DNA from: Dicyema japonicum
Lineage: Eukaryota > Animalia > Dicyemida
Assembly (NCBI GenBank): GCA_011109175.1
Contig: RDEW01000020.1
Span: forward strand, 428,514 to 492,513
DNA: 64,000 bases
Reading direction: 5' to 3'
Part shown: piece by piece, positions 6,535 through 55,059 of the stretch
Position numbering within the stretch: position 1 is the stretch's first letter
Layout: every line of letters begins with the position of its first letter
Notes under the pieces: model-generated
The model's input: only the letters and a program-made list of their open reading frames with translations
Told to the model about the DNA's origin: nothing
Databases searched by the model: none
Made by a program: the position numbers and the translations under genes

Positions 6535-9500
6535 ACAGTTGAGAAGCGATGCTGTGGCCGTTGGATACTGTGGCCGTTTTATGCACGTTGGAGGAATGTA
6601 TTCAAAGGACCTCAGAAAGTGCTCCACAGAAATTGAAGAATTCTTCGCAGGAAGCGATATGTCTGTCTTATTGGGAGATCTAAACGCCAAGAACATTAAA
6701 TATGGATGCCCGGTACCAACGAGGATGGAATCAGGCTAAGAAAATTGAGTGATAAGACTGGCTTCGAGATTTTGACGTCGGAGAAGCCGAATCACTTCTC
6801 GCACTATGGTGGAGACATGTTTTGGGTGTTCCCGGTGTCACCACTGCTCTACACTTATGTGGAGAGACCGATGATCATGTGGGACATCGGGAGCGACCAC
6901 ATCCCCAAGAGATGTCACTGAACCTGGCTCCGGACACTACGGAGTCAGTGTTTACTGGCTCCTCAAAAACTGGAAGGAGGGACCTTATTCCAGAAGTGAT
7001 ATTGACAACATAGACAGAGAACTCTCAATTGTGATGGAGAGATACTTATCACTTTACGCCAAGAAGAGACTGGAAAACTTCCATAGTCAGAATGATCCTG
7101 AAACCGGGAAAATCGGGGAGGGCCTCATTTGCTCTATTTCCAAGATTGTTGAGCGAATTATTTTAAGAAGCTAAACGAGCACATAGAGAGAGTGGTTTCC
7201 TCCTCGCAAAACAATGTGGCTTCAGACGTCGGAAATCCTGCACGGATTGCATCCACCACATGCATTCGGTGGTATTGAGAGGTCTGGAATTCAAGAGGCA
7301 AGTTAATCTGGTATGTTTGGACCTATCCAAGCCTTTCGATAGCGTGTGGCATGAAACCCTGTTATCAAGGCTAGCGGCTTAACATCCAAAGGAAACTTTT
7401 CATATGGATAGTGTTGGGACGAGTATGTCAAAAGATATCCTACTAAGAGGGCCGTTTCATAGGGCTCTGTCTTGAGCCCGCTTCTGTTCAATATGCTTCT
7501 ATCAGACTTTCCAATTCCGCCGGATACGAACACCAAACTACAGTCCGACCCCGAATTGGGGCACCAAGTGCCCCAAAAAGCGGGGGTGCCCCAAAAACAG
7601 GGGTTTAATAAAACAGAGATTTTAAACATCAAAAATCAATTTTAGAAAAATAATCAGTTAATTTATTCCCAGTTATCTTTTTACTTCTTACATTTTTCTT
7701 AAAATTAAGTCGAAAATCGTAAAATTCTTTGAGCATTTCAGGAGAAATGTAAAAAATTTTCTTCTCTAACTGATCAAGAGAATCTTGCGTTTTTCTTAGA
7801 ATTGTTTCCATGTTATCGTTTTCTAAACCTTCGTTGTAAATATTATCAACGAATTCGTCACTTTCCCCATTCAATGTTTCGTTTACGGCATTGTTGATCA
7901 TTTCTTCTGTAATGGTATCTTCAATTTTTACGGAATCACGAATCTTTTCAATTTGATTCCAACAATTAAATATTAAACTTGGATCAAGTTTTTCCCAGCT
8001 TTTAGAAATTAGCAGAATTACATGACAAGGTTTATTTTGTTTATCAACCGTTTGAATTCATCATCATCCTCCTCATAACACAAATACTGAATCAGATAAT
8101 TTGAGTAATAATCTTTAAAGGTCTTGATAATTCCCATATCCAATGGTTGCAAATACGGTGTTGTATTTTTTGGCAAAAATAAAAACTCAATATTTGAGCA
8201 TTCAATAGTTTTATGACATCCCGCATTATCAAGCAATATTAATACTTTTCTGTTGATTGTATAAAATCTTTCATTTATCCGAGTCAACCAGCTCATAAAA
8301 ATATTTCGAGTCATCCATGCATTTTTAGAGGATGAATATGAAAGTCCAAAATCTTTCACATTGAAATTTTTGAGACATCGAGGGTTTTTAAATTTTCCAA
8401 CAATCAATGGCTCAAGTTTTTCCCCATGGAATTGCAACAAAGAAGTACAGTGACTCTTTGTTTTCCCTGTTTAAAGCCAAAAGTATCGTCATTTATTCCG
8501 ACAAAAGACTTTCGTGGAGTCCTTTTTATATAAAGATTTCATCACAATTAAAAACATTTTGTCTTCCATATTGAATAATTTTCTCGTCAAGAATTTTAAA
8601 AAACTCATTGATGTAAGTCAATTCACATGAATTTTTTTCTCCACAAATTGATTTGAAATTAAGTTCATGTCGCTTTTTAAATCTGTCAAGCCAGCCGTTT
8701 GAAGCTTTGAAAGTATCAAATCCAATTTTTGAAGCCGTATAATTTCTCACAATAAGGCATAAGATCCTCATCCTTGTTCAAGAAAAGGTACAATTGTTTT
8801 TTTTATTCGCGAAATTATGCCTTTACTAGTTTTGTATTTTTTACTATCTGTCTTTCAGATAATTTTTTCTTCAATATCAATTTAGCAATCGTTAATTTTG
8901 TTTCGTAGTTAATAACCATTCACAACAAAAAATGTAAATAAACGTGTAAATTAAAATTATATATTTATTAATAAAATATAATTTTATTTACTTATAATTT
9001 CATTCCCCACAATTTTATAGTGCCCCAAAATTTCCATATTTTTTATCGATTTTCCATTTTACTCTGCCAAAATGTTGGCAAAAAAAATGCCCCAAAATCC
9101 GAGAGTGCCCCACCCCTGGGGTCTGCCCCAATTCGGGGTCGGACTGTATCGATATATGCAGACGATATTCTAATTACAGATATGTCTAGGAAGTCAACTC
9201 TATCGGAAAGAAGAATCAAGTCATTCATCGATCAAGTGCAAGATTGGTGCTCCAAGAGAAGGATGAGAATCTCTACGGAGAAGTCCAGCTGCTTGAAAGT
9301 TAGCCGTCTACGGAGACACCGTACGCATCCCTACTCACTTGATATTCCAAAAGTAAACTCACTCCGCTACCTCGGGATATTTATCGATGGAGAAGGTTCC
9401 TTCATGGTGGATATCAGACGAAGAAAGAAGAAGGCGCTACAAGCGCTTCTCTTTACGGGCAAGTTGTTCATAAGTTTGGAGACCTTCTTGTTTATCTTCA

Positions 9501-9820
9501 TGAGGATTAACCTACCAGATCTTCTATAAGGGTGTGAAGCGTGATTTTTCTCCTGTCAAAGAGATAGGATGATGTTACTCATGGAAAAGTTGAGAAGATC
9601 AGCAATAACGTTGGCCCTGGGGAAAAAGCTGTTTGATGTCCTAAGTACAGAAGAAGACAAGATTCTTGCACCGGTCAAAAATATTGTGGAGAAAAGGATC
9701 AAGAAGATCCGACGCTAGGACGAGATTAAAATGGAGATGGGGTGCATCGGAAGAGTCCAGGCAGCATAGGTGGACTCGTTAATAATTTCCAAACTAACTC
9801 CTAATTCCTGTTGAATAAAG
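6535..9820 (+). mobile_element. Degenerate APE-RT LINE (group B, I/Jockey-like) interrupted by a Tigger insertion
   Basis: GDLNAKNIKYGC and DIGSDHIP endonuclease motifs; DLSKAFD-like and GSVLSPLLFN RT motifs. Removing the Tigger restores TKLSIYADDILI. Confidence 0.85.
7541..9146 (-). mobile_element. Tigger/pogo DNA transposon with both TIRs and a frameshifted transposase
   Basis: Perfect 23-bp TIR CAGTCCGACCCCGAATTGGGGCA; TA duplication at 7539-40 and 9147-48; FKASNGWLDRFKKRH, VFNCDE, LLDNAGCH and LQPLDMGII motifs. Confidence 0.95.
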
Positions 9821-9821
9821 T

Positions 9822-10055
9822 GTTTTCGGTCCACTTCATTACTACGGAGAAAACTAAACTTCTTTTCCTCAAGATGGCAATGTCCCCTGACCATCTCCTC
9901 GAGTCGGACATTAAACAGATACGATGAGAAACCTACCCCGTTGTGGAGATTAACCGAGGACTCCAAAACTAACCGGAGGAAAAGTACTGATATGGGCACA
10001 GGGGTTACTTAATAACTCTTATTATCTTTCTCGTGATTTCGGGGTTAATAAATTA
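9822..10055 (+). mobile_element. 3'-end fragment of a LINE related to the element at 11500-13930
   Basis: Similar C-terminal coding (P.PLW..DSKTNR) ending ...TGVT*, followed by ctttctcgtgatttcggggttaataaa, identical to the end of the 11.5 kb element. Confidence 0.75.
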
Positions 10056-10260
10056 GTGACATAAGGATCTTTGGTGGTTATGGAGACTCCTCCATGTTAG
10101 AAGATTGGTTCTTTGTCCATAATTTTGGTGGAATCTATAATTGATATACAACAGCAGGGAAATCAGAAGAATTTAAAATTTATTGACTTTATGAAGTACC
10201 CTTTTAAGCACCTTCTGTGATTTTGTTTCAATTTATATGGAAGACTCAGGTGAATATATA

Positions 10261-11426: not shown

Positions 11427-11499
11427 CATAACTTAATTTCAAATTACTAACAAGACTGTCATCACTAACACTTTCTCATTGTCAGCGTTTGTGGTAAGT

Positions 11500-13930
11500 C
11501 TTTATTTTATTAACCCCGAAATCACGAGAAAGAGGATAAAAGTTATCGTCTAATTAAGTGATTTCGGTGTCCATACCAGTCCTTTACTGCGATTAGTTTT
11601 GGAGTCCTGGATAAATCACCACAGCGGGGAAGGTTTCATCTCATATCTCGGGCAGGTGTTCATATATAATCTGATGTGCGGTCCGATGGGATGGTCAGGA
11701 GACTTTGCCATGTTGAGGAAGTCCCGGTGACGTTCTATAAGGTATTCCATGATTGGGGGGACGTTTAGTGTTCTCCGTAGTAAAAGCAGGGAGTCATACA
11801 ATGTTATTCGTAGTGCTGCCCGTAATTCTTTTCGTTCTGAGGTAAACATCATTACATGTGACTATCCTGGTGATATATTCAGACGGTTCTTCAGGAACAA
11901 AGGACACATCTGGTTTAGTAGATCTTGCTTGGATCGTGTCGCCTCCTCGATTTTTCTATGATTCACTGCGACCACGAGATCATCCGCATAAGATAGAAGA
12001 ATCGTGTTTTTGGTGGTTGGGAATGATAGGTCACTGATGAACATGTTGAAGAGCATTGGAGACAACGGTGAACCTTGTGGAACTCCATTTGGAAGGTATC
12101 GGGTTTTGATTTTTGGTTGTTTGCCACCACTTGGCCCATTCGACCGTTGATGAAGTTAGCCAACCATGACTTTAATTTAGGGTGGATCGACGTCGTAAAA
12201 AAATTTTTGCTGTAAGGATCTTCCGGGATACTGAGTCAAAAGCCTTCTCTACATCCACTGAGACCAGCACGGTTCTCTCATGTGGATTTTGGATATTCAG
12301 GCCGTCCGAAATGAATTGAACCAGTTTTGTTAGATGAGTTGTTGTTAAGTGTCCTTTTTCCATATTGACTGAATTTTGTTCTCGTTTATTGAGAAGTTGA
12401 AAATTTGTGTTATTGTGGCCGTCGCGGAAGGGCCCAAGTGTTTCAGTTCGAGAATGGAGATGTCATCTGAGCCGCGGGACGACGAGTTATTCATTTTCCT
12501 TATTACTGAGTGCACCATTGAAGAGTCGAAGAAAGTCATGTTGGGACATTTATTTCTTCGACCATTGCCAGAACGAACATCCAGGTCTTTTGAATATGGT
12601 TTATGACTAATATTCACATAGTACTTCATAATGTCATTGGGATTGGATATGGCTCTCGATGTCCAATTAAATGTGGAGAGCACTTCTTGAGCCTCCTTAT
12701 CGATTTCCATAATACAGTGAGGGAAGTATTGTTCTTAGCTTTTCTGCGCAAAACTTCCCAACGTTCTTTGTTGTGTTTTGTGACGTTCCGTGTGATTTCT
12801 TTGTTCAGTTTTGATATCCTTTCAGTTACGTCCACTGATTGTCTTTAGAAATTCTTCAGCTTATTTCTCGTTTTGATTAGACCTTGAGTTTCAGAATCAA
12901 TTGGGTGTGATGAACGTTGAAAACGACCCATCGGAATGTATCTTTGCGAGCTCGGAGTATAATCTCGTCGAAGTATTTGACAGCAGCGTCGATAGACCCG
13001 AAGTTCTCTATCCAAAAGGCCTGGAGGTGTAGTTTAGTAAAATGTGTCAAGGCGGCTCATATTGCCTTTGAGTAGTTCACATTGGATCTAGGAGTGTTCA
13101 TTAACTTATGTTTTTATGGGATCTTCATGAAGATCGGGTTATGGTCGGTATGTAAGTCGCATATAGTATACCATGAAATAACAGCCGCAAGAGAGAGCAG
13201 CAAAAGAAATGTCTGGTAAAGTAGGGTTGTCGTCTCGACGGAGAGGGGTCCTTGTGTGTTTGCTTGGATTATTGAGAATGATCAAGTCGTCAAAAGTGTC
13301 GGATATGAGGGCTCCCAGTTGATCCAGTTGTTGATCAGCATACCACTGAGAACATTTAAATCACCGCCAATTAGCGTGCTTTCCAACTTGGTAAATCGCT
13401 TGAGTTTGGGACTGTAGCCGCTGGGGCATGACGGTGGAGGGAGTATGTACATATTGACAAATGTCAATCGGAAAGAGGGTAGGCATATTCTCAGAGTTTG
13501 ATGTTCCAGTGTGTCGTCTTGGCGGGAGGGGTCCGGAATGTCGTCCGAGATATTTCTGGCCATTATATGCTTCCTGATTATAGTAATAAGGCCTCCTCCC
13601 TTTCCATGACTTCTGTATCGTCTGAAAACGGAGTATCCCTGAAAGTTGGGGGTTGGTCGCCGTGGGTTAAGTTTCGTCTCTTGGAAAAGAGCTATATTCA
13701 CTGAGTGTTTTATGAGAAAGCGTTGTAGTTAGGCAATTTTTGTTAGGATACCATTGATGTTAATTTGTAATATGACTAGATCTGATCCAGGATTTTCCTC
13801 GACATCTCCACAGGAAAGGAGTAGGATTCAACACCATCCGCGCGTCCATGGTTCCGAGATAAGGAGTTTGTGACTATTTTCCAACACTTCTAGTGAGCGA
13901 TGCCACCACGTAGGTGAGTCACACGGCATG
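11500..13930 (-). mobile_element. Near full-length degenerate single-ORF APE-RT LINE with N-terminal 2A-like leader
   Basis: LLLSCGDVEENPGS, then LQININGI, IALFQETKL, GGGL, GGDLN, DVEKAFDSVS, QGSPLSPMLFN and YADDL. Ends TEIT* with hairpin and AT tail. Confidence 0.9.
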
Positions 13931-16246: not shown

Positions 16247-19200
16247 TTACAAAAGACAGCTCTGTATCGAACAAAAATTTATATGAAGAACGAGGCTATC
16301 CTGTTATCAAAACACAGAGGATTCTGGAGTCACTTATATCTGACATGTTAAGAACAAAGAAACTTCTACTCTGAAGAAAATGAGAATTTTAAAAGTGCTC
16401 TCAAAAACACTTAGAGACCAAACTGGTAACGATTTATGAACAATTTATCCGACCCACAATGACGTTTACAAGTCCTTCGTGGGCAATGCAGATTTCACGA
16501 TCCTCCTCATTGAAACTATCCACACTCGAAGAGACGGCAATAAGGTTAATTGGACCAAAGCACAAAATCCAGCCCATTGAAAATTTCTTAATCGAATTAC
16601 AACGGAAACTCTTAAAGGAGGCTAGTTTACCGAGCTTCTTTCTATTCCATACACTATCGAAATATCTACATTCATACAGAAAATTTGAGCCGATGCCATG
16701 TCCAATGAGAAGAGCTGTTCAGGATTCTCAAACCCGCCGGACTCGTCCTCCCCTTGTCGGTCTTATTATTGAGGTATACCATTCAGGCATAAAGAGTCTG
16801 GATGGGGAAAAGCAAATGGTTCTTTTTGGTGTATTATTACACTGAGCGCCACCACAAAAGGTGAACCACATGACACCACGAGACAAACTCATCCGGTCTT
16901 GGATCACTTAGTTAGTTGAAAACTTTTATTTCTTTCTCTGACCCAGTGATCTTGGGGGTAATAATAATTAAATAAATTGGAAATTAAATAACATTTGTTA
17001 AAATTCAAAATTCCACGTTTAATTGTCTTTGTTGTTAGGCATATGATGATTTGTAAGCAAGCCAGTCATGATTCTGACAATTTGATGATTTGCTTCCTGA
17101 TGCCACTCAATCGTAGTAGATGTCATCCATATTCTAGTATCCTTTAAGTATGACTCACCTTTTATTTTATATTGCATCCTTACTCAATTGGTGTGCATAG
17201 TACCCACATTTTAAAGAATATCTCGATTTGGTGCCTTAACATAATTCAGTCTGGAAATATTGGATCTTAATTTCCTTTCCTTAATTCGCTCACGACTTCT
17301 TTTATAATTAAATTTTGTTAAAAGATCAAGGATCGATTAGTTAAGGTAAAAACTCCGTGGACGGACATCTTGAACTATTGTCCGTTATGGGCTTCTAGTT
17401 TTTAGTTGTTTGACAATGATGTCGTAGTGGTTGCCTTTGTTTTAGTTTGGGTAGAAGTGATTGAAGAGTCATAGATTGGGGATTATGGCATGTGATTCTG
17501 TGGTGGTTACTGGATTGAGAATATGTCCCTTAACCACAATCCACTTGCTTAGGCCAAAAGTATGTGAAATTGTCTATGGTAATTACATTATTCCATCGCT
17601 GCTGTCCCAGGTCAACCATGACTCTCATTATGTTTGGCTGAATAATCGTTAATTACTATTCTTTATTCGATTTTTAGTCATTGAGGATTTGTTTGGGGAG
17701 CTATAAGTCGTAGATGAGAGAATGTAACATTTCTTTTATGGCCCAAGTGGCGGTTTGATAATATGTATTTCCGGGGGGAATTACAATATGATCCACAGGA
17801 TAGCAGTTTTCGCAAAAGACATCTTTTTGATATCACGTTGACACTCATTACTCTGCCTTTTCATGACACTCATTCTTGGAAGTAAACCAACCAATGTACG
17901 GATAATGTTGGTTTTAATATTCGGAAGTTTATATTCTGTCATGTCCTCTAGAGAATTCCGTTACGTGCAATAGTTAGTAAACCTCCACCAAGTTTTCAAA
18001 AATGTCTACACTACCAAGGGGGATTTAAGTGTTAGGTTTCCATATGATGTCTTTTGCGATTTCTCTCTATTCAAAGATCTTGTTCTTGACTTCATTGATA
18101 TTAGATGGGCAATTGTCAATGACCCCGGTTTATATTCACCATCCCCACTTGCTGGTCCATTTGATTTAGAGGATATAGAAATTGCGACTCTTTCCAACCA
18201 AGTGATTTATAATTTGCATCCATCTTTTCACACATCTTTGCAAAAAGTTTAGACTTTAAAAAACTGTGTGAATAATCTTATCTAAAGATATCCCGCCATG
18301 CTGCTATGAAAAAAATTCTGATGCGTGCTCTTGAAGCTGCAGCCTTCCCGGCAGTACTGGAGCCCGTGGGATTGAATCACGGAGACAGGAAAAGACCGGA
18401 TAGGTTAACTTTCCGTTCATTGAGGGAAAATCGGGAAAATCGCTCGTTAAATAGCTTAACTGTTTTTTACTTTAATAAACTAAATGGTTATCGGCGACAT
18501 AAGAAAAATGGTTAACGGCGACATCCCAAAATATGCCAGAGAATTGCTCTTCTCTGCAAGGCTACTTGCTTTCAAAAAACCCAACGGAGGAATCCGCCCC
18601 ATTGCGGTCGGGAACTATTTTAGAAGACTTGCAGCAAAAGTAGCATCGACCATGGTGAGCAGACAACTCAGAGAGGAGTTCTTTCCTAAACAAATGGGTG
18701 TTAGTATCCAGAACGGATGTGAGGTTGCGGTTCATGCAGCAAGGCGTTTCTTCACACAGAAAAATATTTCAAATGAATGCATTGGAATCAAGTTGGACAT
18801 AACGAATGCCTTTAATTCTCTCAGAAGAGACGAAATTATGAAAACGTGTTGGAAGAGGGCTCCAAAGCTTTTCCCTCTTGTCAATCTATCCTATGGGGAA
18901 GATACGTCTTTGGTTTTTGAAAATGAAATTATTAAATCAAAAACGGGTGTACAACAAGGAGATCCGCTCGGACCTCTATTATTTGCCTTGACCATTGATG
19001 AGGTTGTGAGCTCAATTGATGCTCAGCTAAATCTCTGGTACCTCGATGATGCCACAATTGGAGGATTGTTCAAAGAAACATACAATTCATTACGTAAAGC
19101 GTTACCCGCTTTAAAACATTTGGGCTTGGACATCAATGTTAACAAATCAGAGCTAATAAATGTCTCATATCCATACACCGACTTCCTCTCTATCAAGGAG

Positions 19201-19552
19201 TCTTTTGAAGAACTGCTTCCTGGCCAGTTGATAAATTATATTTCCTCGGATGCCCACTCAGCGAAGAAGAACTCAAGAACCATCTACTTTCCAAAAATGA
19301 AGAATTAACACGCCTTGCGAAAAGATTGTCATGTTTCGACTCTCACACATCTTTCTTTCTAATGAGAAACAACATCGGACTACCCAAGCTTTTATATCTA
19401 CTCCGATGTTCACCCTGCTACGAACAATATGACATTCTACTTTCAATGGACAAGTCTCTCAAGCAAACAGTCGAGTCAATAATTAACGTCCGCTTTGACG
19501 AACTTGGTTGGAAACAATGCAAGCTTCCCTCTGGATTTGGGGGTGTCGGAAT
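16247..19552 (+). repeat. Segmental duplication, copy 1 (about 3.3 kb; copy 2 at 25720-29026)
   Basis: Near-identical sequence at an offset of 9473-9475, with identical ORF translations (274, 69, 63 and 63 aa). Confidence 0.97.
18290..19552 (+). mobile_element. CRE-like non-LTR retrotransposon RT fragment (in duplicated block)
   Basis: KKPNGGIRPIAVG, QMGVS..GCEVAVHAAR, KLDITNAFNS, GVQQGDPLGPLLF and WYLDDATIG. Confidence 0.9.
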
Positions 19553-23178: not shown

Positions 23179-26100
23179 ATGTCATGTGGCTCGCCGACTG
23201 AGGAACAAATTAAATCTCAAAAAAGTTATGGAACATCTCGGTAACGAACAACAAAAATGCTTCAGAAATGAGAAACAAATTAAATCTCAAAAAATTTATG
23301 AAACATCTCGGTAACGAACAACAAAAATTCTTGAAAATGGTGCGATCTTCTGGTAACCATCTTGAAGATGAGTTTCTTGCCTACCAGAAGTATGCTCGCA
23401 AATTTGAGATCAAACCTTCCCCCTTTTGGACGATCATAAAACATTGCAGTCAAAGTCGAAATAAAGAAGGACGCACTGACACCGGGATCACTTTTTAGAC
23501 GATAACTTTTTCCTTTTTCCTGTGTTCCCGGGGTTATAATAATAATGTGGCTCGCCGACGACGTCGTGGCATTTAGAAGAAAAGAACCACACTTCCCCTA
23601 TCTTCACGGGTGAACCAATAAGGAAGGCCTCCGCCGCTGCGGAGACGTTGAGGCAAATCCTGGACCAGCCAGAATAGTCCAACTCAACATAAATGGAATC
23701 AAGAACAAGATACTCGAACTAAGGACATTTGTGAAAGAAAATCACATCGATCTGTTGCTAATTAAAGAGTCTAAACTTTCTCCAAAGATTTCAACACCAG
23801 TATTTCGAGATTCATAGTAATTCGCCGTGACAGAATTGGCAAACTTGGTGGGGGCCTTCTCACAGTTATTTGCAACGGCTTTCCGTTTGAGGATTTAACT
23901 AGCAGTGCCTACAGTATGCTTAAAGGATATGGAAATCTCGAACTTTTGGTTACCAAAATACGATTCCCAAGACTATGAATAATTCTTGTCAACGTATATC
24001 TCCCACCGTTGAGTTCCTGCTCGTCCAGTGCTTTCAGACTCACTCCTCTCGCATCACTGAAGGATGTGATTATCTGTGGTGACTTCAATGCGAAGCACCC
24101 ACTGTGGCTGACAGGACAAACCTACGACAAAAAAGGGAAGATGATGATTGAGGACCTCCACAGCCTATGTATACTCAACGATCCTGCATCCCATACAAGA
24201 ACACCTACTCGACGTAACGATAAACCTTTTTTATCGGCATCTCACTGTCATCACCGCCCTTGGCCCCTCTTATTGGTCAGTGAAATGTGACTGGTCAGTG
24301 AAATATGACACCAGGAGTGACCACAATCCAATATTTTTGGAGGTCACGGATAAAAGGACAATGTACAAGGATGACTAATTACAGTCTTGCGAATTGGAGA
24401 GGATTCAAAGATTACGTCGATAATTGCATTGGACTATTAAATTTCCCCACTCCTCCCACCGTCGAACAATTAGTGAAATGGTTCAACTCCACCCTAAACG
24501 CTGAGAAAAAGAAGTACATTCCTATGGGGTGACAACCTACGTCATCTAAACGTTTCAACACAACGACGTAACATCTGATCAGAGAACGAAATAATCTAAA
24601 GATGGTAAAATCACCGACAGAAGAGAACATCAGGAAAATACGAGAATTGAACAGAGAGATTGACAACAACATAAAGACAGAAAATGCAAATAGATGGACG
24701 AGACTATCAAATGCTTTCTGCAAAAACCCCCAATGCAGAGAGTGTGAAGTGGAGTGGATCAAAACATCAAAAGATCCTCCCCAGAGAGAAAAGTCAGTCT
24801 ACATAAAACCAGACACTCTGATAAAATATTACACTATATCTCCTACAGAAGTTTTCAAGAGAACATCAAGTATTCCTGAAAAAGATTAAACCGAAACGTC
24901 CGATGACTGGTTCCTATTTACTAGTCAGGATGTTCGCAGAGCCATATCCAAAGCCAACAACTCAGAGGCCAAAGGACCAGACAACATAACCACATGTGAA
25001 CTAAAGCACCTAGGCCATCGAGCCCTGGAACTATTATCTTCAACCTATCTATTAACACAAATACAATCCCTGAAATATGGAAGAAGTCCCTAATCAGACC
25101 TATCCGAAAACCCAACAAACCAATAGATGAACCATCTTCCTACCGTCCAATATCTATTCTAAGTGCGGTCTCAAGGATCCTTGAAAGGCATGTTTTGGAT
25201 AAAATAAAGACTCAATACCTCCGACCCAGCACGGATTCCAGAATAACCATTCGACACAACACACCTTACAACCATCACACAATTCATTGCGGAAGGATTT
25301 ACTCCCCAAACCAGAGGACAGTACTTATATATCCGTGGACATTACAAAAGACTCAGTCCTAGAAAATGAAAAAATCCATGAAACCTGAAACTTTGGCTTG
25401 GAAACTTCTTAAATGGAAGACGAGCACAAGTACTCTGCAACAACATCAAATCAAGATCTCGCTATTTCACAAATGGAGTCCCTCAAGGCTCCCCACCATC
25501 ACCCAACTCTTCAATCTCTACATAAACGACATGCCACAAACCTGTAATGAAAACTATCTAATTCTCCTATGCCGACGATATCATTCTTGCCTTCAAGGAC
25601 AGAAGTATTTAATCAGCAACTCAGTCCGCTCAACAAATGCTTGACAAGCTGGAACTATAGCTCTCAAAGCGGAGAATCGACACATCAACAACAAAGTCCT
25701 CTGTCACGCTGTTTACCACTTACAAAAGACAGCTCTGTATCGAACAAAAAATCTATATGAAGAACGAGGCTATCCTGTTATCAAAACACAGAGGATTCTG
25801 GAGTCACTTATATCTGACATGTTAAGAACAAAGAAACTTCTACTCTGAAGAAAATGAGAATTTTAAAAGTGCTCTCAAAAACACTTAGAGACCAAACTGG
25901 TAACGATTTATGAACAATTTATCCGACCCACAATGACGTTTACAAGTCCTTCGTGGGCAATGCAGATTTCACGATCCTCCTCATTGAAACTATCCACACT
26001 CGAAGAGACGGCAATAAGGTTAATTGGACCAAAGCACAAAATCCAGCCCATTGAAAATTTCTTAATCGAATTACAACGGAAACTCTTAAAGGAGGCTAGT

Positions 26101-26450
26101 TTACCGAGCTTCTTTCTATTCCATACACTATCGAAATATCTACATTCATACAGAAAATTTGAGCCGATGCCATGTCCAATGAGAAGAGCTGTTCAGGATT
26201 CTCAAACCCGCCGGACTCGTCCTCCCCCTTGTCGGTCTTATTATTGAGGTATACCATTCAGGCATAAAGAGTCTGGATGGGGAAAAGCAAATGGTTCTTT
26301 TTGGTGTATTATTACACTGAGCGCCACCACAAAAGGTGAACCACATGACACCACGAGACAAACTCATCCGGTCTTGGATCACTTAGTTAGTTGAAAACTT
26401 TTATTTCTTTCTCTGACCCAGTGATCTTGGGGGTAATAATAATTAAATAA
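23179..26450 (+). mobile_element. Full-length degenerate single-ORF APE-RT LINE with 2A-like leader (Ingi/Vingi-like organisation)
   Basis: GDVEANPGP at 23641-23667, then VQLNINGIKNK, GGGL, CGDFNAKHPLW, SDHNPI, GVPQG and YADDI. Ends RSWIT* with hairpin and (TAA)n-like tail. Confidence 0.92.
23199..23544 (+). mobile_element. 5'-truncated LINE 3' end inserted into the 5' tip of another LINE
   Basis: 15-bp TSD ATGTGGCTCGCCGAC at 23184-23198 and 23545-23559; ends TGITF* with hairpin and ataataata; internal duplication of about 70 bp at its 5' end. Confidence 0.88.
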
Positions 26451-29026
26451 ATTGGAAATTAAATAACATTTGTTAAAATTCAAAATTCCACGTTTAATTG
26501 TCTTTGTTGTTAGGCATATGATGATTTGTAAGCAAGCCAGTCATGATTCTGACAATTTGATGATTTGCTTCCTGATGCCACTCAATCGTAGTAGATGTCA
26601 TCCATATTCTAGTATCCTTTAAGTATGACTCACCTTTTATTTTATATTGCATCCTTACTCAATTGGTGTGCATAGTACCCACATTTTAAAGAATATCTCG
26701 ATTTGGTGCCTTAACATAATTCAGTCTGGAAATATTGGATCTTAATTTCCTTTCCTTAATTCGCTCACGACTTCTTTTATAATTAAATTTTGTTAAAAGA
26801 TCAAGGATCGATTAGTTAAGGTAAAAACTCCGTGGACGGACATCTTGAACTATTGTCCGTTATGGGCTTCTAGTTTTTAGTTGTTTGACAATGATGTCGT
26901 AGTGGTTGCCTTTGTTTTAGTTTGGGTAGAAGTGATTGAAGAGTCATAGATTGGGGATTATGGCATGTGATTCTGTGGTGGTTACTGGATTGAGAATATG
27001 TCCCTTAACCACAATCCACTTGCTTAGGCCAAAAGTATGTGAAATTGTCTATGGTAATTACATTATTCCATCGCTGCTGTCCCAGGTCAACCATGACTCT
27101 CATTATGTTTGGCTGAATAATCGTTAATTACTATTCTTTATTCGATTTTTAGTCATTGAGGATTTGTTTGGGGAGCTATAAGTCGTAGATGAGAGAATGT
27201 AACATTTCTTTTATGGCCCAAGTGGCGGTTTGATAATATGTATTTCCGGGGGAATTACAATATGATCCACAGGATAGCAGTTTTCGCAAAAGACATCTTT
27301 TTGATATCACGTTGACACTCATTACTCTGCCTTTTCATGACACTCATTCTTGGAAGTAAACCAACCAATGTACGGATAATGTTGGTTTTAATATTCGGAA
27401 GTTTATATTCTGTCATGTCCTCTAGAGAATTCCGTTACGTGCAATAGTTAGTAAACCTCCACCAAGTTTTCAAAAATGTCTACACTACCAAGGGGGATTT
27501 AAGTGTTAGGTTTCCATATGATGTCTTTTGCGATTTCTCTCTATTCAAAGATCTTGTTCTTGACTTCATTGATATTAGATGGGCAATTGTCAATGACCCC
27601 GGTTTATATTCACCATCCCCACTTGCTGGTCCATTTGATTTAGAGGATATAGAAATTGCGACTCTTTCCAACCAAGTGATTTATAATTTGCATCCATCTT
27701 TTCACACATCTTTGCAAAAAGTTTAGACTTTAAAAAACTGTGTGAATAATCTTATCTAAAGATATCCCGCCATGCTGCTATGAAAAAAATTCTGATGCGT
27801 GCTCTTGAAGCTGCAGCCTTCCCGGCAGTACTGGAGCCCGTGGGATTGAATCACGGAGACAGGAAAAGACCGGATAGGTTAACTTTCCGTTCATTGAGGG
27901 AAAATCGGGAAAATCGCTCGTTAAATAGCTTAACTGTTTTTTACTTTAATAAACTAAATGGTTATCGGCGACATAAGAAAAATGGTTAACGGCGACATCC
28001 CAAAATATGCCAGAGAATTGCTCTTCTCTGCAAGGCTACTTGCTTTCAAAAAACCCAACGGAGGAATCCGCCCCATTGCGGTCGGGAACTATTTTAGAAG
28101 ACTTGCAGCAAAAGTAGCATCGACCATGGTGAGCAGACAACTCAGAGAGGAGTTCTTTCCTAAACAAATGGGTGTTAGTATCCAGAACGGATGTGAGGTT
28201 GCGGTTCATGCAGCAAGGCGTTTCTTCACACAGAAAAATATTTCAAATGAATGCATTGGAATCAAGTTGGACATAACGAATGCCTTTAATTCTCTCAGAA
28301 GAGACGAAATTATGAAAACGTGTTGGAAGAGGGCTCCAAAGCTTTTCCCTCTTGTCAATCTATCCTATGGGGAAGATACGTCTTTGGTTTTTGAAAATGA
28401 AATTATTAAATCAAAAACGGGTGTACAACAAGGAGATCCGCTCGGACCTCTATTATTTGCCTTGACCATTGATGAGGTTGTGAGCTCAATTGATGCTCAG
28501 CTAAATCTCTGGTACCTCGATGATGCCACAATTGGAGGATTGTTCAAAGAAACATACAATTCATTACGTAAAGCGTTACCCGCTTTAAAACATTTGGGCT
28601 TGGACATCAATGTTAACAAATCAGAGCTAATAAATGTCTCATATCCATACACCGACTTCCTCTCTATCAAGGAGTCTTTTGAAGAACTGCTTCCTGGCCA
28701 GTTGATAAATTATATTTCCTCGGATGCCCACTCAGCGAAGAAGAACTCAAGAACCATCTACTTTCCAAAAATGAAGAATTAACACGCCTTGCGAAAAGAT
28801 TGTCATGTTTCGACTCTCACACATCTTTCTTTCTAATGAGAAACAACATCGGACTACCCAAGCTTTTATATCTACTCCGATGTTCACCCTGCTACGAACA
28901 ATATGACATTCTACTTTCAATGGACAAGTCTCTCAAGCAAACAGTCGAGTCAATAATTAACGTCCGCTTTGACGAACTTGGTTGGAAACAATGCAAGCTT
29001 CCCTCTGGATTTGGGGGTGTCGGAAT
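25720..29026 (+). repeat. Segmental duplication, copy 2 (probable source copy)
   Basis: Both flanking elements (LINE on the left, CRE-like on the right) continue beyond the duplicated limits here but not in copy 1. Confidence 0.95.
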
Positions 29027-33829: not shown

Positions 33830-35010
33830 TCTTCTAAAAGGAATAACTTTGTTTTCCTTCAGATCAACCGTCCGTCTTCCCAGTCTCTTGTCTAAGTAAA
33901 TAGAGGTGTTACGGACTTTTCACTGCTGGAAGCTAAGCGATTTGTCGAGAACCATTCGTCAAGACGGTCCAGATTTTCTTGCAATCTCGAAGTGGCGATC
34001 TGGGTGTCCTGATCACGTGATGCAATTATAATGTCGTCAGCATAAGTCAGCAATAATATAATTTTCGATGTCCGGTGTGGGGAGGTCCGCCATTAATAGA
34101 TTTAATAATACTGGAGACAAATGGGATCTTTGGGGAACACCACTAGAGAGATCTTGACTGACCAATGCAGACGCGTCCTCACCGATCACTAAGAAAGTTA
34201 GCTAACCAGAGCTTAAGCTTTACAGGGATCTTTTTTTGGTAAATTTTCCAAGTAAGAATCCTCCTTGACACAGAGTCAAAAGTTTTGTGGACGTCAATGG
34301 AGCAAAGTACAGTCTTCATGTGGCCTGTGCAAGTAATCATATCGTATAAAGTTAGTCAATGCAGATAAGTGGGTCAAAGTAGATTTTAATTTAAATCAAT
34401 TGTTACAAGTGTTTGCGCATGTCTCATTTATAGGGCAACAATAGAAATGTGAAGAAGAGGTTGACATTCTAAATTGTTTCTTTTGCTGGACATGCTGTCG
34501 TGAAAGTGCTTAATAATAATGCATCGGACAGTCAAAATCTATTTCCCGGGTTCTTCCGAATGGTGTTCCCCAGGGATCCCCTTTGTCTCCTTAGTTATTC
34601 ACTCTATTCATCTCCCAACGCCAGAAACCGAAAATAATATTCCTCTTATGCTGACGACATTGTCATAGTTTCACGCGATTGGGACATCCAGGCTTCAACT
34701 TCAAGATTGCAACCTGAATTAAGGAAACAGCGACGTTATCTTCCTTAAAAGATAACAAAAGATTATTGGGGTCATTTTTTACATACCATGCCATTCTCGC
34801 TCCATGTTGAAAATGTGTAAAGAAGACCAACGTGCAGAATTCGAAAGTATTCATAGCCAATACATGAAGCCATGAATTTCCTAATCACGTGCCCGTACGA
34901 CTAGGAGCATCCAGTTATATGGACGATATGTGTTTTTGTTGGTTCGAGGGGCAAGTTGGACCGTCTCAAGATCACGTGAGTAGTTAGTTTATTGTTACCG
35001 TGGTCTTTGG
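33830..35010. mobile_element. Two LINE RT remnants in opposite orientation
   Basis: Minus strand 33830-34340: GVPQ and YADDII. Plus strand 34480-35010: LPNGVPQGSPLSP and YADDI, ending LKIT* with hairpin. Confidence 0.7.
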
Positions 35011-35839
35011 AGTTTTTCATCACGTCATCCCACCGAAATCAAATTGTACTTTTCATGTTTAATTGACGCTAAGCAAGAAACCACACAACCCACGTTATTT
35101 CAAAAGCAATAACCTTTTACGTTTCCGCAAAGAACCAGGAAACCATTTAGGGGAAAGAATGTGAGAATAGTTTTATCAAAAATGGGACAGTGTCATTCAA
35201 TATAATAATATTTTCATTCAAAATGAGAAATTTTCAGTTTCCGTTTAGGTTAGACACGGGTCACTTAAGAAAATTGATCTGAGCCTATGCAGATATATCT
35301 TGTTTCTCTTTGTTGGAGAGATGGTGACATGCTTCGTTTCTCTATTGGATAACAGTTGAGAAAAATGTCTATAAAAAGATACAAGAATATGTTTCACGTC
35401 GAGCTCCTCACATCACGGTAGAGGTATATAAGACCTGTTTGAAGAAGATTCTCTGTGTACCTGGAGAAATATAACGTTTCTATATGATTTCTACAGGAGA
35501 CCAAGATTACCAGGAGCCCCAACGAAAATTATGGAAAATATCGATTAATGTGTCTACCAAGTGATTCAAAATACTGTGGACTCAAGTTCCTTATCCATTT
35601 AAGATTGGCATCCACTTTGTTTTGCATGAGTGACAATATTTGTGTAATTTTAGTCTGACCCCAAAATGATGCGAAAATTCCTTAATTTTGAGGTTTTCCT
35701 CAAAAATCTTCTTAATAAGCTTAATAAAAATGTGAAACAATTACGTTCTAAATTTTTATTTTCCATTTATATCCTGGTTAATTGGGCTGTTTTCGTTGTC
35801 ATGTTAAATAAATAAAAAATGTTGTTTTCTGGATTGTAT

Positions 35840-36490
35840 TCATGATTGGTTGATAGCTAACCGTTTCTCAGTATCGACTCCAAAATCATCATGCACTCTA
35901 TTCACCTCCGACCGGCGGTCCAAAGAAGCACCAGAAATCTTCATCGGACATACTCGGATACCTGTCACAAGAAACCCCTCAATCCTGGGAGTGACATACA
36001 ACAGGCTGCTTGATTTTACCTACCATGCCAAACAAGTCATCACCAAAGGACTACAGAATAAAGTAATCGGAACCATATACCGCCAGACAATCTGCTTATG
36101 CTGCGTGGAGATTCGCGTTATCCAAGAACTAAACTACTGCAAAGGAAAACAATACGTATGCTGGGACCACAATGTGGAACAAAAATACCTCCCCTGCTGA
36201 CGGAATCCACAAATCGTAGATGTGGTTCCCGATTTCTTCGTATTTGCGAGGAAGATGGGACACCCAATAAGGCTCTCATTGCTCCACGCAAAAGAAAATC
36301 GGTTGGCTAAGAAATTTCAGTCCCCAATCAGCTTCCTCTGCAGGGATCAAAGAAGGCATTTCCGTTCGACAGTGAGAACAATCGAGACAGGCTTCGGATG
36401 GCACGTTTGGTTGCGGGAACTGGGATGACTCAACTAGTTGACATTACTTTGGTCTTTTTTTCTCGGTGATCCCTGGGTTAATAAATAAAT
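35840..36490 (+). mobile_element. 5'-truncated LINE 3' portion
   Basis: KSSCTLFT..., NPSILGVTYNRLL.F; ends ctcggtgatccctgggttaataaataaa. Confidence 0.75.
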
Positions 36491-36499
36491 GTTGTTTTC

Positions 36500-37926: not shown

Positions 37927-38563
37927 AACTCATGGTGTCCGCGTGGCGCAATGTGGTGCTGTGTGGTTAATTGGTTGAAGTTTTCTGCTAGCTTGTCTCT
38001 TCCTCTTCTCTCTTCCTATTAGAGTGGCGTCATGTGAGGATCATTTGCTCTCCCCCACTCCACTGGAGGGGTTTCCACAACTGCATGTAATGGACGTCTT
38101 TAACCTTTTATGCTGATTCCGGATGTACTCTGTTTCTGTAGAAGTGGAAACTGGATACACTTAACTAGTTGTTTACTTTAACTTCTTTCTCGGTGTATCC
38201 GGGGTTAATAAATAAATAATAAATAAATAACTCATGGTGTCAAAGTGGTGCTATGCGGCCACTTGATGGAATATTTTTGTTTGTTTCTTCTTTTCCTCCT
38301 CTTTCCTTTCGAATAGAGTGGCGTCATGTGATCCACTTCTCTCGGGTGGCGCCCAGTGCCAGGGTGGCTTGTAAAAGGATAATTTTTCTATCCCCATTCC
38401 ACTGAAGGAGATCCAACAAGTGCAGGGAAAAGTCGTCTTCCACTTTTTATGTGGGCTCTGGATGGACTTGTATGACATTCAAAAAATTATGTTTCTGTTA
38501 CAGTAGAAAGTGGACACTTTTAAGCAGTTGTTAACTTCTCGGTGTATTCGGAGTTAATAATAG
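37927..38563 (+). mobile_element. Two tandem copies of a short (about 300 bp) non-autonomous retroposon; third partial copy inverted at about 39900-40022
   Basis: AACTCATGGTGTC at 37927-37939 and 38229-38241; shared blocks tagagtggcgtcatgtga and cccca.tccactg; LINE-type 3' hairpin and (AAAT)n tail. Confidence 0.75.
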
Positions 38564-38759
38564 TGAGCTACCAGAAATACTTTTCACTAAGAGATTCTTG
38601 TGACCATACAAAGAACGTTATTATACCTTGACCCGAAAGAGAAGAGTAGGAGTTGCCTGATGCCGTTTCACCCAGAAATTGTAAGCTAGTGAGGAACTTG
38701 AAAGATATATGCAAAGGAAAATCAAATGATGATAGTATAAGAAAATTCCTCCAGAAGAA

Positions 38760-39530
38760 AAATTTTCTAGATTATCTCGAATAAGCAGACAGCATAAAAG
38801 ATAATTCACAAATGTACACAGTATACGATTGCTTCGACAAACAAATGATACAAGTTCCGATGGCAGACAAACCTGCAGAGGATCCATCATCTTACAGACC
38901 AATATCAGTCCTATGCGCGGCTTCAAGAATTCTGAAAGGATGGTCCTCGATTGTATTCGAGATACATTTCAATGTCTGCTTTTCAATATGGGTTCAGAGC
39001 AAACCATTCAACTTCGACTTTACACAATCCCTCTTACAGTCACACCAACCATCCTGGGAGTTAAGTTTACCAAAGACTTACATTTGCTAAACATGTTGAG
39101 AATCGGAAAACTGCGGCAATTACGAGAATGAGGATCCAGAAGATAATCTCGAATCCCCTCGGAATCTATCGGCAATGTGTATACGAAAGTTAGTTGTGGT
39201 CAATGGGCATTTCCCGCTCTTCTCTCCTGAAACTGTCCGCAATCCATGAAACTACCAAAAAAGTAATTGGGCACAACTTTATGTCCACCCTTCTGGAAGC
39301 AGTTTTGATAGGACAACAACAGAAGAGTGTGAGGGCAGCTACTCTGGTAACAGCTCCCTCTATGAACAAATACCTTAATAACCGTCCTAGATACGAGATA
39401 ACCGCATGTACTTTCTGGAGAGCCATCCAGGATTCTCATCCACGTCGGATAGGACGTCCCCTGTATCGGTCTGGGATCACTTATTTAGGAACTTTCTCTC
39501 TTTTCCTTTGATCCTGGTAATAATAAACAA
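38760..39530 (+). mobile_element. Internally deleted LINE remnant related to 23179-26450
   Basis: PSSYRPISVL, PTILGV, ISRSSLLKLS and WRAIQDSHPRR; ends RSGIT with hairpin. Confidence 0.8.
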
Positions 39531-40033
39531 ACTAAAGAAATCATTAGCTATTATGGGAAATTAACATTGAACCCAAAATAATAAGCCTAAAATTAATACG
39601 ATAATTGCAATGCTATTAAATTGTATGTTTACCACGTGCCATACTCTACTCATGAGGCTCAGACTATTAATTCCAATACAGAAAATGAAAAAAGCTAGAA
39701 AACTACTTAAAAACTTACGACCCGGTATACCAATAAACTCCTACGTAAAGTCCTTCAAAATATTGTGCTGGAATAAATGAAAGGACCCGTATACGGATAC
39801 GTACCAAGATGGATTTGAGAAGGGAGATCAACGTTTCAACGGTACTTATCTAGTTGATGATCGCCACTTTCCTCCAAAAAAATCAATATATTATTTAATT
39901 TCCACTTTTTTCCACTTTTACAGAAACAAGTCCATCCGGAATCAACATAAAGGGTAAAAGATGTCCATACTTGCAGTGTGAAAACCTATCCAGTGGAGTG
40001 GGGAAGAGCAAATGATCCTTTTTCGAAATATTA

Positions 40034-41863: not shown

Positions 41864-43817
41864 CAAGACAAGACAATGACAAGACAATTTTATTTTCTAA
41901 CAAACCCCAAAACTAATTACTGTAAAGAAACCAAAACCTGAACCAAAACTAATTAAGTGGGTTTGTATTCATCGTGTAGGGTCATTTTATGAGACACCAC
42001 ATGTCTCTACTTCGTTTGGACCCCAAAAATTACATCACATTTTCCATAAGTGATGTAATAATTTTTCTATCTTTCTGACTTTCAGGTCGTAATCCTCTTC
42101 GATATTAGATTTTAAGTCCAGTCCATATGCCAATTTAATCGCAAATCTTCTGGACTTTTCCAATTTTTTGACAAAGACATCACTTTCTTTTGTTCTAAAC
42201 CATCCTTGATAACCATATATCAAGAATGGTTCAACACACGCCGAATACACAAAAAGAAAAGTTTCAGGCTCCAAATGAAATCGAATTAAAGATTTCAACA
42301 TTCCTGTAGCTTTCTTTCTTCGTGTTTTAATATGTTCCTTGAAAGATCCTCTTCGGTCTATCAACAATCCGAGATACTTCAATGTTTCAGAGATTTTTAT
42401 ATCCCCAGTATTCACACATTGATTAATATTTTTTCTTTTACTTGCAATCCAAGTGACTGTTGTTTTTTCCCTCGATAGAGTCAACCCATTGTTTTGGCAC
42501 CACTTTCCAATCTTAGTAATATGGGATTCCACCCTTTTCCATGAAATTTGTTTATTCATGCTTGAATCAAGCACAAGAATGTCATCAGCATAAATAATCA
42601 TTTGACTATTTACGCTCTCTGTTTTCGGCAAATCTCTCATTACGCAATTGAAGAGTAGCGGGCTGAGAATTGAACCCTGTGGAACTCCTCTTCGCAATTC
42701 AATTTTCTTTGAAATTAAATTTCCAACACGTATATATGACTTTCTTTTTGAAAGAAAGTTTTCTATCCATAATAACGCAGTTTTCCCAATTTCTGCTTTT
42801 GACAACGTATCAACAAGTCCAAAGTGCCAAACACTGTCAAACGCTTTTGTTATATCCAAACATGCTATTGTAAGAAATTCCTTTTTATTTCGTGAAATTT
42901 CGATTGCAGATCTTAGCTCTTTAAAGCAATCTCCAGTCCCTTTTTTATGCCGAAATCCCAGTTGATTATCAGAGAGAAAATTATTATCCTCAACATGCCT
43001 TGATAGACGATTGAAAACAATTTTTTCCATAACTTTCGATATTGAGCAGACTAGGCTAATTGGCCTATAACTATCTGCTTTTGACCTTGGCTTTCCTTTT
43101 TTCACAACCATGCGTACAATTGTTCGTTTCCAATAAGCTGGAACATGACCAAAACTCCAAGAAGAATTATATAATATTTTTAGGCACTCAATCAAAATTG
43201 GGCCTGCGTTCTTGAAAATACTCATTGGGATAAAATCCCACCCTGGTGCTTTATTTTTGCAACCCTTAATTGCAGCATTTATTTCTTCCAGCGTTATAGG
43301 ATGACACAAGGGACCACTCAGTTTCGACTTTTCTTTATAACTACTTCTTGTATCTTGTACTTCTATCGGAATAAAAGATGCCGGATCTATCTCTTGAATT
43401 TTGGACAATTGTCGACGTAAAACATTTGGAATTTCTTCTTTTGGAATAGTGAGACCATCATCTGACTTGAGAGATATTTCTTCATTCTTATTACTGGGAG
43501 AATTCATTCTTGCATATAGTTTCCAAAATTTTGGGTTCTGTCGACGTAACTTTGAACATTCTCTTTTCCATACTTTTTCTTCATTCTTCTTTACAACATC
43601 CATTATTTTCTTCTTCACTAACTTGATCTGCATTTTAAGTTCTTGAGAGTCGAAGATATCCCAACACCTCTTTAATTTATTTTCTAACTTATTCTTCTCC
43701 TGACGCAAAGAGCGTTCTTCTACTCCTATTATCATATTTTCCTGCGGCAACAGATTTTTTCTTTTTCCATAATTTTCCAGATAACTTAACAACAAAGATC
43801 TTATTTTGTTATCCAGA
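41864..43817 (-). mobile_element. 5'-truncated group B LINE
   Basis: 11-bp TSD AGCAAATCCGA (41853-63, 43818-28); (TCTTG)n-like tail; 5' part matches 63721-64000. Confidence 0.92.
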
Positions 43818-43822
43818 AGCAA
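42035..43822 (-). CDS. LINE reverse transcriptase ORF, 595 aa uninterrupted, lacking its N-terminal endonuclease
   Basis: KAPGWD, YRPISLV, QLGFR, LDITKAFDSVWH, GVPQGSILSPLLF, YADDIL and KYLGL. Confidence 0.93.
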   Translation of the reverse strand: MLLDNKIRSLLLSYLENYGKRKNLLPQENMIIGVEERSLRQEKNKLENKLKRCWDIFDSQELKMQIKLVKKKIMDVVKKNEEKVWKRECSKLRRQNPKFWKLYARMNSPSNKNEEISLKSDDGLTIPKEEIPNVLRRQLSKIQEIDPASFIPIEVQDTRSSYKEKSKLSGPLCHPITLEEINAAIKGCKNKAPGWDFIPMSIFKNAGPILIECLKILYNSSWSFGHVPAYWKRTIVRMVVKKGKPRSKADSYRPISLVCSISKVMEKIVFNRLSRHVEDNNFLSDNQLGFRHKKGTGDCFKELRSAIEISRNKKEFLTIACLDITKAFDSVWHFGLVDTLSKAEIGKTALLWIENFLSKRKSYIRVGNLISKKIELRRGVPQGSILSPLLFNCVMRDLPKTESVNSQMIIYADDILVLDSSMNKQISWKRVESHITKIGKWCQNNGLTLSREKTTVTWIASKRKNINQCVNTGDIKISETLKYLGLLIDRRGSFKEHIKTRRKKATGMLKSLIRFHLEPETFLFVYSACVEPFLIYGYQGWFRTKESDVFVKKLEKSRRFAIKLAYGLDLKSNIEEDYDLKVRKIEKLLHHLWKM

Positions 43823-46612: not shown

Positions 46613-47279
46613 GGTGTAGGGTTTAGAGGTGTCTGGGAAAACCTTTGCAGAGCCTTACTGGCTATTTTTTGGAATGTGTTGATTTTTTCCAACGTTCCGT
46701 GATTTTGGAGGCTCTTTTCCGGCTAGCCTCGAGTTAAAATAAAATATTTAATTTTCATTCGATTACAAATAATTTGAAAATTCAATAGTAAATATTTAAA
46801 TTTTATAATTATTTATGCCTGGCTGGCATCAAGAGGATCCAACTATTTTTCTCCAAGGGACAATGTCGCTACCTGGAGAAGTGCTGGAATGCTGGAACGA
46901 TTCAGGATCAATAATTAGTTGGTTACCCTTGGTCTTTGGAATTATTATTATTAATAATAACATTAGAGACCACGGTTATACAAATTAACTAACATTAGAG
47001 ACCACGGTGACCTCATCTTGGCCCGATGATCCTTCCTCGACCCCACAAAAGCACGTATCGGTCGAGTGACTGGACCTTCGCATTCACGATGGTGCGTTCC
47101 ATGGTTCATTCGTATCAAGGATTCAAGAGGCATTGGTAGCAGGAACTCTCCAGAAATCCAGCGTTCCGTGATTTGGAGTCTCTTTTCTAGCTATCCTCGA
47201 TCTTCAAGACATTCTGAAGAGATGAATGGGTCCATATACCACATGCATAAAGATGGTTTAATTAATTTAGTAGTAATTG

Positions 47280-54950: not shown

Positions 54951-55059
54951 ATTAGGCACAATTGAGACGTTTCCATAACTATTATTCGAACTTTTCAACG
55001 TTTCATAATTATTATTTGAATTTTTCATTTTCATCGACAAGGTCATTTATTAATTTTAT

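Follow-up and report, generated by a model that had tools for sequence, protein, structure and literature searches.

A stretch of 64,000 nucleotides from the dicyemid Dicyema japonicum (GenBank assembly GCA_011109175.1, contig RDEW01000020.1, forward-strand positions 428,514 to 492,513; hereafter the window) carries a recurrent hairpin at the 3' ends of its long and short interspersed nuclear elements (LINEs and SINEs). These tails are a real and abundant feature, well supported as an RNA structure. They are probably the structured 3' recognition tails of stringent-type LINEs and of SINEs that borrowed them, given that they combine a covarying 3'-terminal stem-loop, a variable terminal microsatellite, sharing between LINEs and SINEs, and no poly(A). 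On this reading, the tail is a previously undescribed example of a known LINE-enzyme recognition signal, with a stem that overlaps the terminus of the second open reading frame (ORF2). Distant LINE clades are not united by one such signal.

The window is AT-rich (guanine-plus-cytosine (GC) content 0.31-0.41) and crowded with fragments of non-long-terminal-repeat retrotransposons, and several of its ORFs match the RVT_1 or LINE endonuclease domains. The published D. japonicum assembly comprises 67.5 Mb in 377 scaffolds, with 36.7% GC and 49% repeats; on LINEs, the genome paper states only that ORF2 copies are numerous (PMC6736024). The genome searched here held 67,542,437 bases in 377 contigs. 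Two covariance models were used: R1 was built on nine ends listed by a sequence-only reading of the window and R2 on class-1 tails (see below) only. The same nine ends were aligned with MAFFT (alignment A1). About 315 kb of DNA from the window and fetched loci provided about 21 tails that are less than 85% identical to one another, and the 21 distinct tails of this set were aligned independently with MAFFT (A4). Covariation was assessed against 500 shuffles and against controls in which the 3' partner was slid by 1-3 columns.

The hairpin has a typical architecture. Its consensus stem is 10 bp long on the sense RNA, usually CYGGGAUCAC paired with GUGAUCCYGG, and encloses a loop of 25-50 nt that begins with the ORF2 stop codon and continues with a TTAG motif and a pyrimidine tract. 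The stem is followed by GGGGUUAAUAAA and a short A/T-rich tandem repeat that forms the very end of the element. The sequence-only reading had proposed that the stems differ while pairing is kept, and the alignments bear this out. In A1, 90% of stem cells are paired, five of the ten pairs show double changes, and no shuffle (0/500) reached the observed covariation score. In A4, 88% of cells are paired, compared with 79.4 +/- 1.5% after shuffling, and double-change cells number 25, compared with 9.8 +/- 3.1 (0/500); pairing falls to 36-56% in the slid controls. The exact 10-bp stem was also predicted de novo by RNAalifold (alignment A5), and it is present in the single-sequence minimum free energy (MFE) fold of 10 of 12 copies, the two failures being the decayed copies G (9988) and J (36409).

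Pairing appears to take place on the sense-strand RNA, as the same reading had suggested from G-U pairs: G.U/U.G cells outnumber A.C/C.A cells by 31 to 6 (binomial p 4e-5, which is only indicative because the cells are not independent). An excess this strong excludes a strand-symmetric DNA feature. In addition, the non-coding 3' arm follows changes in the codons of the 5' arm, from ATC/GAT to TAC/GTA to TAT/ATA and from GGG/CCC to AAG/CTT. Two short motifs of the earlier description are enriched: CACTTAATTAG occurs eight times with at most one mismatch (1.8 expected from shuffles) and GGGGTTAATAA 11 times (1.4 expected). The latter agrees with the GG(T)TAATAAA-like tails described earlier, which correspond to the GGGGTTAATAAA-like sequence after the stem. 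The TAG-containing loop motif of the earlier description is likewise enriched in the form of CACTTAATTAG, but it consists largely of the ORF2 stop codon and a second TAG nearby.

The tails lie at true 3' ends of LINEs and SINEs, as had been claimed. In the copies, the GGGGTTAATAAA-like sequence leads into a tandem repeat of variable length, (TAAA)n, (TAA)n or (TTGTC)n, and then into unrelated flank, and most copies have an AATAAA within GGGGTTAATAAA directly 3' of the stem. SINE B ends in (TAAA)2-4 and the LINE family I in (TTGTC)0-4, with unrelated flank beyond each and no poly(A) tract. SINE B is about 330 bp long with a constant 5' boundary, and a target-site duplication was found at one copy. 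Its last ~75 nt align to the tail of the A-type LINE, so that class-1 tails are common to SINE B and to 5'-truncated, reverse transcriptase (RT)-bearing A-type LINE copies. The latter retain RT remnants and differ in 5' extent, as expected under 5' truncation. SINE B is probably of the RNA polymerase III (Pol III) type. ARAGORN detected no tRNA in the window and Rfam gave no tRNA, 5S or 7SL match on the SINE-bearing loci, although box-like motifs are visible by eye in the head of the SINE. Its copies are 86-94% identical and therefore not recent. By contrast, family I is a young LINE, the only one seen. Many of its copies are 100% identical, its ORF1 contains CCHC knuckles, and its ORF2 of 898 codons encodes an apurinic/apyrimidinic endonuclease (APE) and an RT. 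The LINE carriers are divergent. In the RT C-terminus, identity is 33-36% between A and F types and 27-29% between either of them and family I (by tblastn, the A-type remnant is 33% identical to the F type and 29% to the ORF2 of family I).

All nine hairpins named in the sequence-only reading were found where it had placed them. R1 identified 13 credible copies in the window (E <= 2.5e-4), in line with the previous estimate of about a dozen, and four of these had not been listed. The genome search by covariance model that had been proposed was also productive: among 47,661 rough first-look candidates, all of the 150 that were scored matched R1 (150/150). Loops and 3' arms set out at least two related tail classes and one outlier. 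The window copies and their carriers are given below, the 13 tails being those found by R1.

11496-11578, minus strand: class-1 tail of a 5'-truncated A-type LINE (R1 84.9 bits); 5' arm 11558-11567 (E-I-T, then TAA), 3' arm 11516-11525, then GGGGTTAATAAA
11619-12104, minus strand: degenerate RT C-terminal remnant of the same A-type LINE, upstream of the preceding tail (tblastn)
37935-38222, plus strand: SINE B copy with a class-1 tail at 38140-38222 (R1 79.9 bits); arms 38151-38160 and 38193-38202, pseudo-codons E-T-G-Y-T-TAA kept
16887-16975, plus strand: class-1 tail, C type, W-I-T-TAG
26362-26450, plus strand: class-1 tail, identical duplicate of the 16887 tail through local duplication
23471-23551, plus strand: class-1 tail, D type, T-G-I-T, with TTT as a decayed stop and then TAG
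39460-39537, plus strand: class-1 tail, E type, S-G-I-T, with TAT as a decayed stop
9988-10062, plus strand: decayed class-1 tail, G type, G-V-T-TAA; weak stem with four G.U pairs, absent from the MFE fold
36409-36495, plus strand: decayed class-1 tail, J type (R2 71.6 bits)
55053-55129, minus strand: class-2 tail of an F-type LINE; 5' arm is G-I-T then TGA, 3' arm GTGGTCTTGG pairs through several G.U
55105-55524, minus strand: C-terminal 139 codons of an F-type ORF2, open throughout; the terminal AERIGIT-stop falls within the hairpin
34955-35030, plus strand: class-2 tail, H type, K-I-T-TGA
46891-46959, plus strand: decayed class-2-like tail (R1 31.2 bits)
61323-61389, plus strand: class-2-like tail, 3' arm mostly deleted, G-I-T-TGA kept
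41886-41977, minus strand: outlier tail of family I; 8-bp stem 41959-41966 with 41900-41907 in shifted register, ending in (TTGTC)n
42035-43822, minus strand: RT part of the young family-I ORF2, stop ~70 nt upstream of the hairpin

The duplicated C-type tail belongs to a larger local duplication (16887-19308 and 26362-28782, offset ~9.5 kb) that includes identical 274-codon RT ORFs at 18484-19308 and 27958-28782. A second SINE-B-like copy (38245-38571, plus strand), 69% identical to the first, lies head-to-tail directly after it; its tail is degenerate (R2 20.3 bits, E 0.12). The RT at 9020-9526 was considered as the owner of the 9988 tail and rejected, as its family has a different hairpin (termed type Y) that ends near 9800. 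The 9988 tail is a short fragment on its own.

In the main classes, the 5' arm of the hairpin is formed by the last three sense codons of ORF2. A stop codon (TAA, TAG or TGA) directly follows x-[I/V/Y/M/F]-T in 16 of 21 distinct tails; in most of the other five, the stop has decayed by a single base. The last two bases of the arm and the next base make up the threonine codon, which places the stop at the loop entrance. The use of all three stop codons at one position indicates a genuine stop rather than merely an RNA motif. F-type frames remain open for 139-289 codons into the arm, leaving a very short 3' untranslated region (UTR) of ~60 nt, and a second TAG in another frame follows the ORF2 stop. 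In family I, the ORF2 stop lies ~70 nt upstream of the hairpin and the arm is therefore non-coding.

This C-terminus has a wide distribution. A HMMER search with the F-type RT C-terminus against 1.84 billion representatives retrieved 40,062 relatives, of which the nearest are ~37-42% identical, besides a 58%-identical entry labelled as octopus (P0002). Several full-length APE+RT relatives from metagenome eukaryotes end in G-I-T or G-V-T. We considered whether distant relatives with G-I-T-stop or G-V-T-stop carry the same hairpin and rejected this for the two that were folded. One (L061) has GGA ATC ACT TAA followed by an (AATC)n end and showed no equivalent hairpin at G-I-T-stop in the single sequence folded, and in the other (L063) a long-range stem of another kind begins at the stop codon; neither fold is significant. 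As relatives share the C-terminus without the hairpin, the C-terminus is likely the older of the two, and the hairpin appears to have been built onto a pre-existing ORF2 C-terminus. By the same comparison, the 5'-arm sequence shared across divergent families seems to be mostly the conserved protein C-terminus G-[IV]-T-stop.

The tail classes differ in how far they can be related. With R2, all eight class-1 copies of the window were recovered (E < 1e-9); the scores were 21.9 bits (E 0.05) for the best class-2 tail (55053) and 14.4 bits (E 2) for family I. Class 1 is robust and the relation of class 2 to it borderline; family I does not rise above noise when left out of the model. Class 2 has the same arm, G-I-T-stop and GG...AATAAA context as class 1, but its loop is distinct and its 3' arm rich in G.U. 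Family I has three elements in common with class 1 in the same order: the exact 11-mer CACTTAATTAG, which occurs only twice in the window, GGGGTT, and AATAAAAT. The nine listed ends are valid hairpins that do not form a homogeneous set, the family-I tail (41886-41977) being an outlier in shifted register.

A phylogenetic tree of RTs, comprising the LINEs of this genome and relatives from other organisms, resolves the LINEs of this genome into two deep groups (100/100 support), although the A type and one other sequence (L048b) are long branches whose exact placement is unsure. A and F types fall with relatives from other organisms and family I falls in the other group, which includes families with quite different 3' hairpins (type Y and others). 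We rejected the proposal that the family-I hairpin is conserved within its own lineage: its 68%- and 49%-identical RT relatives (L050 and L047), when folded, showed no equivalent terminal hairpin. Together with the position of family I in the other deep group, these non-equivalent folds suggest that its tail is either a captured module or a case of partial convergence.

Other 3' structures were observed among these LINEs. The type Y module is unrelated to the tails described here and occurs in the window at 9740-9800 (plus strand) and at other loci (L041:6060-6140, L045, L048). It comprises a G+C-rich hairpin, such as GAGTCCAGGC..GTGGACTC, and a TTAATTAACTCC-like sequence, and it ends in (ATTTG)n or (TTTGG)n. 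The window copy has a frame that terminates as G-R-V-Q-A-A-TAG, its stop lying in the loop, and the RT at 9020-9526 is of this type. Family I and its 68% relative have a further structure upstream of the terminal hairpin, GGGG...GAGACA-loop-TGTCTC...CCCC (L037:7480-7540; window region 41978-42034, minus strand), of which a variant is found in L047; this may be the native 3' UTR element of the LINE group to which family I belongs. Three family-I insertions at different loci (L031, L033, L046) have the same 3' flank, GGATTTGCTA.AAGTAACCTTATATCTCGG, which suggests repeated insertion into another repeat or co-mobilisation with it. In a LINE family whose RT is 48-50% identical to that of family I (L038, L039), the 3' UTRs contain a tandemly duplicated block of ~100 nt that includes the ORF end, such that RVRGGR-stop is present twice.

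The elements show a 3' sequence shared by LINE and SINE, a compensatory stem-loop, and a short, variable tandem-repeat end, as is typical of stringent-type tails. By analogy with characterised LINEs, the ORF2 protein would recognise the stem-loop and target-primed reverse transcription would start in the terminal repeat, where slippage would generate the variable repeat number. SINE RNAs with a class-1-type tail would be copied in trans. The stem is maintained through compensatory changes while the terminal codons drift. Several observations weigh against this interpretation. The whole Rfam library, including its curated LINE 3' elements, returned no family at gathering score in the window, and a permissive Rfam scan of two tails returned noise only. 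No intact A-type or F-type LINE was found, the longest open frames being ~530 codons. Part of the stem conservation could represent protein-coding constraint on the 5' arm, and the AATAAA of the tail could serve polyadenylation instead.

Four other explanations were considered. The sequence-only reading had favoured one structural signal across distant LINE families, and a strong version holds that this signal is universal by descent and that any enzyme mobilises any tail. It is true that the carriers are divergent: A and F types have the same stem consensus and G-I-T-stop despite only 33-36% RT C-terminal identity, and family I, from the other deep clade, has CACTTAATTAG, GGGGTT and AATAAAAT in the same order. 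Zebrafish L2 stems are also interchangeable, but in that system, the only one tested, it is the loops that give specificity (PMC4176376), and the dicyemid loops differ by class. Furthermore, the class-1 model detects class 2 at E 0.05 and family I at E 2, the shared arm is largely conserved C-terminus, the closest relatives of family I (68%, 49%, 48% and 47% RT identity) are without the hairpin, and other LINE families use the type Y hairpin. The sole young LINE has the outlier tail. Comparison of its 100%-identical copies with the 86-94% alike copies of SINE B indicates that the active LINE is not visibly driving the class-1 SINE. Cross-mobilisation is thereby slightly disfavoured on comparative grounds, and we regard universal exchange as unlikely. 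Another proposal would dispense with functional structure altogether: the 5' arm would be conserved as coding sequence and be complementary to the 3' arm by chance, or the stem would be a DNA palindrome. The arm does encode protein, and distant relatives have G-[IV]-T-stop as well. However, changes in the codons are matched in the non-coding 3' arm, G.U exceeds A.C, the slid controls fail, and non-coding SINEs retain the stem. The palindrome and the coding artefact were rejected on the slid controls and the G.U/A.C asymmetry, and this proposal as a whole is highly improbable.

It is also conceivable that the tail is a 3'-end processing or stability element of the transcript, with AATAAA and a protective hairpin, rather than a site of RT recognition. 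Hairpins at 3' ends stabilise many RNAs, and AATAAA lies in GGGGTTAATAAA directly after the stem in most copies. Yet the element ends inside the repeat right after AATAAA, not 15-25 nt downstream, without poly(A); family I ends in (TTGTC)n; and a SINE that is probably Pol-III-type keeps the whole module. A processing role is accordingly a poor candidate, if a better one than the absence of structure. In a further model, the hairpin would also or mainly couple translation termination to cis-loading: the ribosome would melt the 5' arm and the hairpin would refold beside the nascent ORF2 protein. This is in line with the stop immediately 3' of the arm in 16/21 tails with all three stops used, the ~60-nt 3' UTR, and the second TAG in another frame. 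The argument is purely positional, though, and untranslated SINEs keep the hairpin, the family-I stop is ~70 nt upstream, and L061 has G-I-T-stop without an equivalent hairpin; we therefore place this model no higher than universal exchange. A more elaborate form, which we advance as a long shot of about the same standing, is a dual-coded element in which the G-I-T codons were recruited as the RT-recognition arm with the stop at the loop entrance. Termination and refolding would hand the nascent enzyme to its own 3' end, and the tail would be a portable module, captured by the unrelated, active family I with fossil 'T-stop' codons downstream of its own 3' UTR. If true, termination-coupled handover would provide a physical basis for cis-preference. 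Recognition tails of stringent-type LINEs and their SINEs are still the best explanation of the module as a whole.

Tails of this type are also present in a contig filed under an octopus. The best non-self protein match was XP_036356140.1, 'importin subunit alpha-3-like [Octopus sinensis]', a gene model that fuses a LINE RT to importin-alpha: residues 1-171 form an F-like RT (58% identity). D. japonicum had been collected from this octopus, its host (PMC6736024). A 29-kb part (L060; VCDQ01001777.1:385235-414718) of the corresponding 482-kb contig (NCBI GCA_006345805.1) contains the tail family with G-I-T-stop intact; examples of the features seen in this contig lie at L060:1985-2069 (plus strand), 25363-25439 (minus strand), 18143-18184 and 18807-18840. 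Its LINE DNA is 79% identical to many D. japonicum copies, and the importin exons are interrupted by 32-40-bp introns, a dicyemid hallmark. VCDQ01001777.1 is probably the DNA of another dicyemid in the host assembly, judging by these features; its dicyemid-like content may also have arrived via horizontal transfer. The importin part is only 56-64% identical to the best D. japonicum protein, which points to another dicyemid species or to horizontal transfer. Database users should be cautious: a contig filed under the host octopus carries dicyemid-type tails as well as 32-40-bp introns in the importin part of a gene model.

The dicyemid repeat landscape, which makes up 49% of 67.5 Mb, is undescribed. 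The covariance model provides a handle to annotate thousands of dicyemid LINE and SINE 3' ends and to sort partner sets. In addition, more than 15 diverged stem-loop variants with compensatory changes, overlapping an ORF end, amount to a natural mutagenesis series that could help to tell apart what stem, loop and stop codon each contribute to recognition by stringent-type LINE enzymes.

Known retrotransposons resemble the dicyemid elements to different degrees. Like the dicyemid elements, the Drosophila I factor, with its (TAA)n 3' end, terminates in A/T-rich trinucleotide or tetranucleotide repeats and not in poly(A); we know of no shared hairpin module for it. A second comparison is with Ingi/Vingi-related LINEs and their non-autonomous derivatives (PMC5786205, PMC3708506). 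The A/F-type RT has its nearest relatives among elements of APE+RT architecture, and one of these is labelled 'Tcoingi protein-like' by NCBI, a database label that serves as a lead only. Ingi and L1Tc end in poly(A), unlike the dicyemid tails, and we found no description of a stop-codon-spanning hairpin for either. Amniote CR1 elements have a comparable organization: as summarized in PMC8665684 from Suh 2015, they have a 3' hairpin plus an 8-bp microsatellite, presumed to be an RT recognition and priming module and conserved across many families of a genome. The dicyemid sequence and repeat units, (TAAA)n, (TAA)n or (TTGTC)n, differ from those of CR1, and the dicyemid genome has at least 2-3 tail classes as well as LINE families with unrelated hairpins.

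The closest parallels are the stringent LINEs, to which the sequence-only reading had rightly pointed. Their 3' stem-loop is needed and is bound by the ORF2 protein (PMC4176376; PMC1636434). In the eel UnaL2 the hairpin is required for mobility (PMC1636434), and recognition in zebrafish L2 is generic for the stem and specific for the loop, with one stem-loop common to four L2 LINEs of ~60% RT identity (PMC4176376). As in UnaL2/UnaSINE1 and ZfL2-1/ZfL2-2, the dicyemid tail is a 3'-terminal stem-loop followed by short tandem repeats, is common to a LINE and its partner SINE, keeps its stem while the sequence varies, and occurs in related forms on LINEs with diverged RTs. There are also clear differences. 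The dicyemid tails have no sequence or Rfam match, and their likeness to L2 is one of tail anatomy. Their loop is long (25-50 nt), whereas those of UnaL2 and ZfL2 are short and defined, and their 5' arm consists of the last ORF2 codons, with the stop codon opening the loop.

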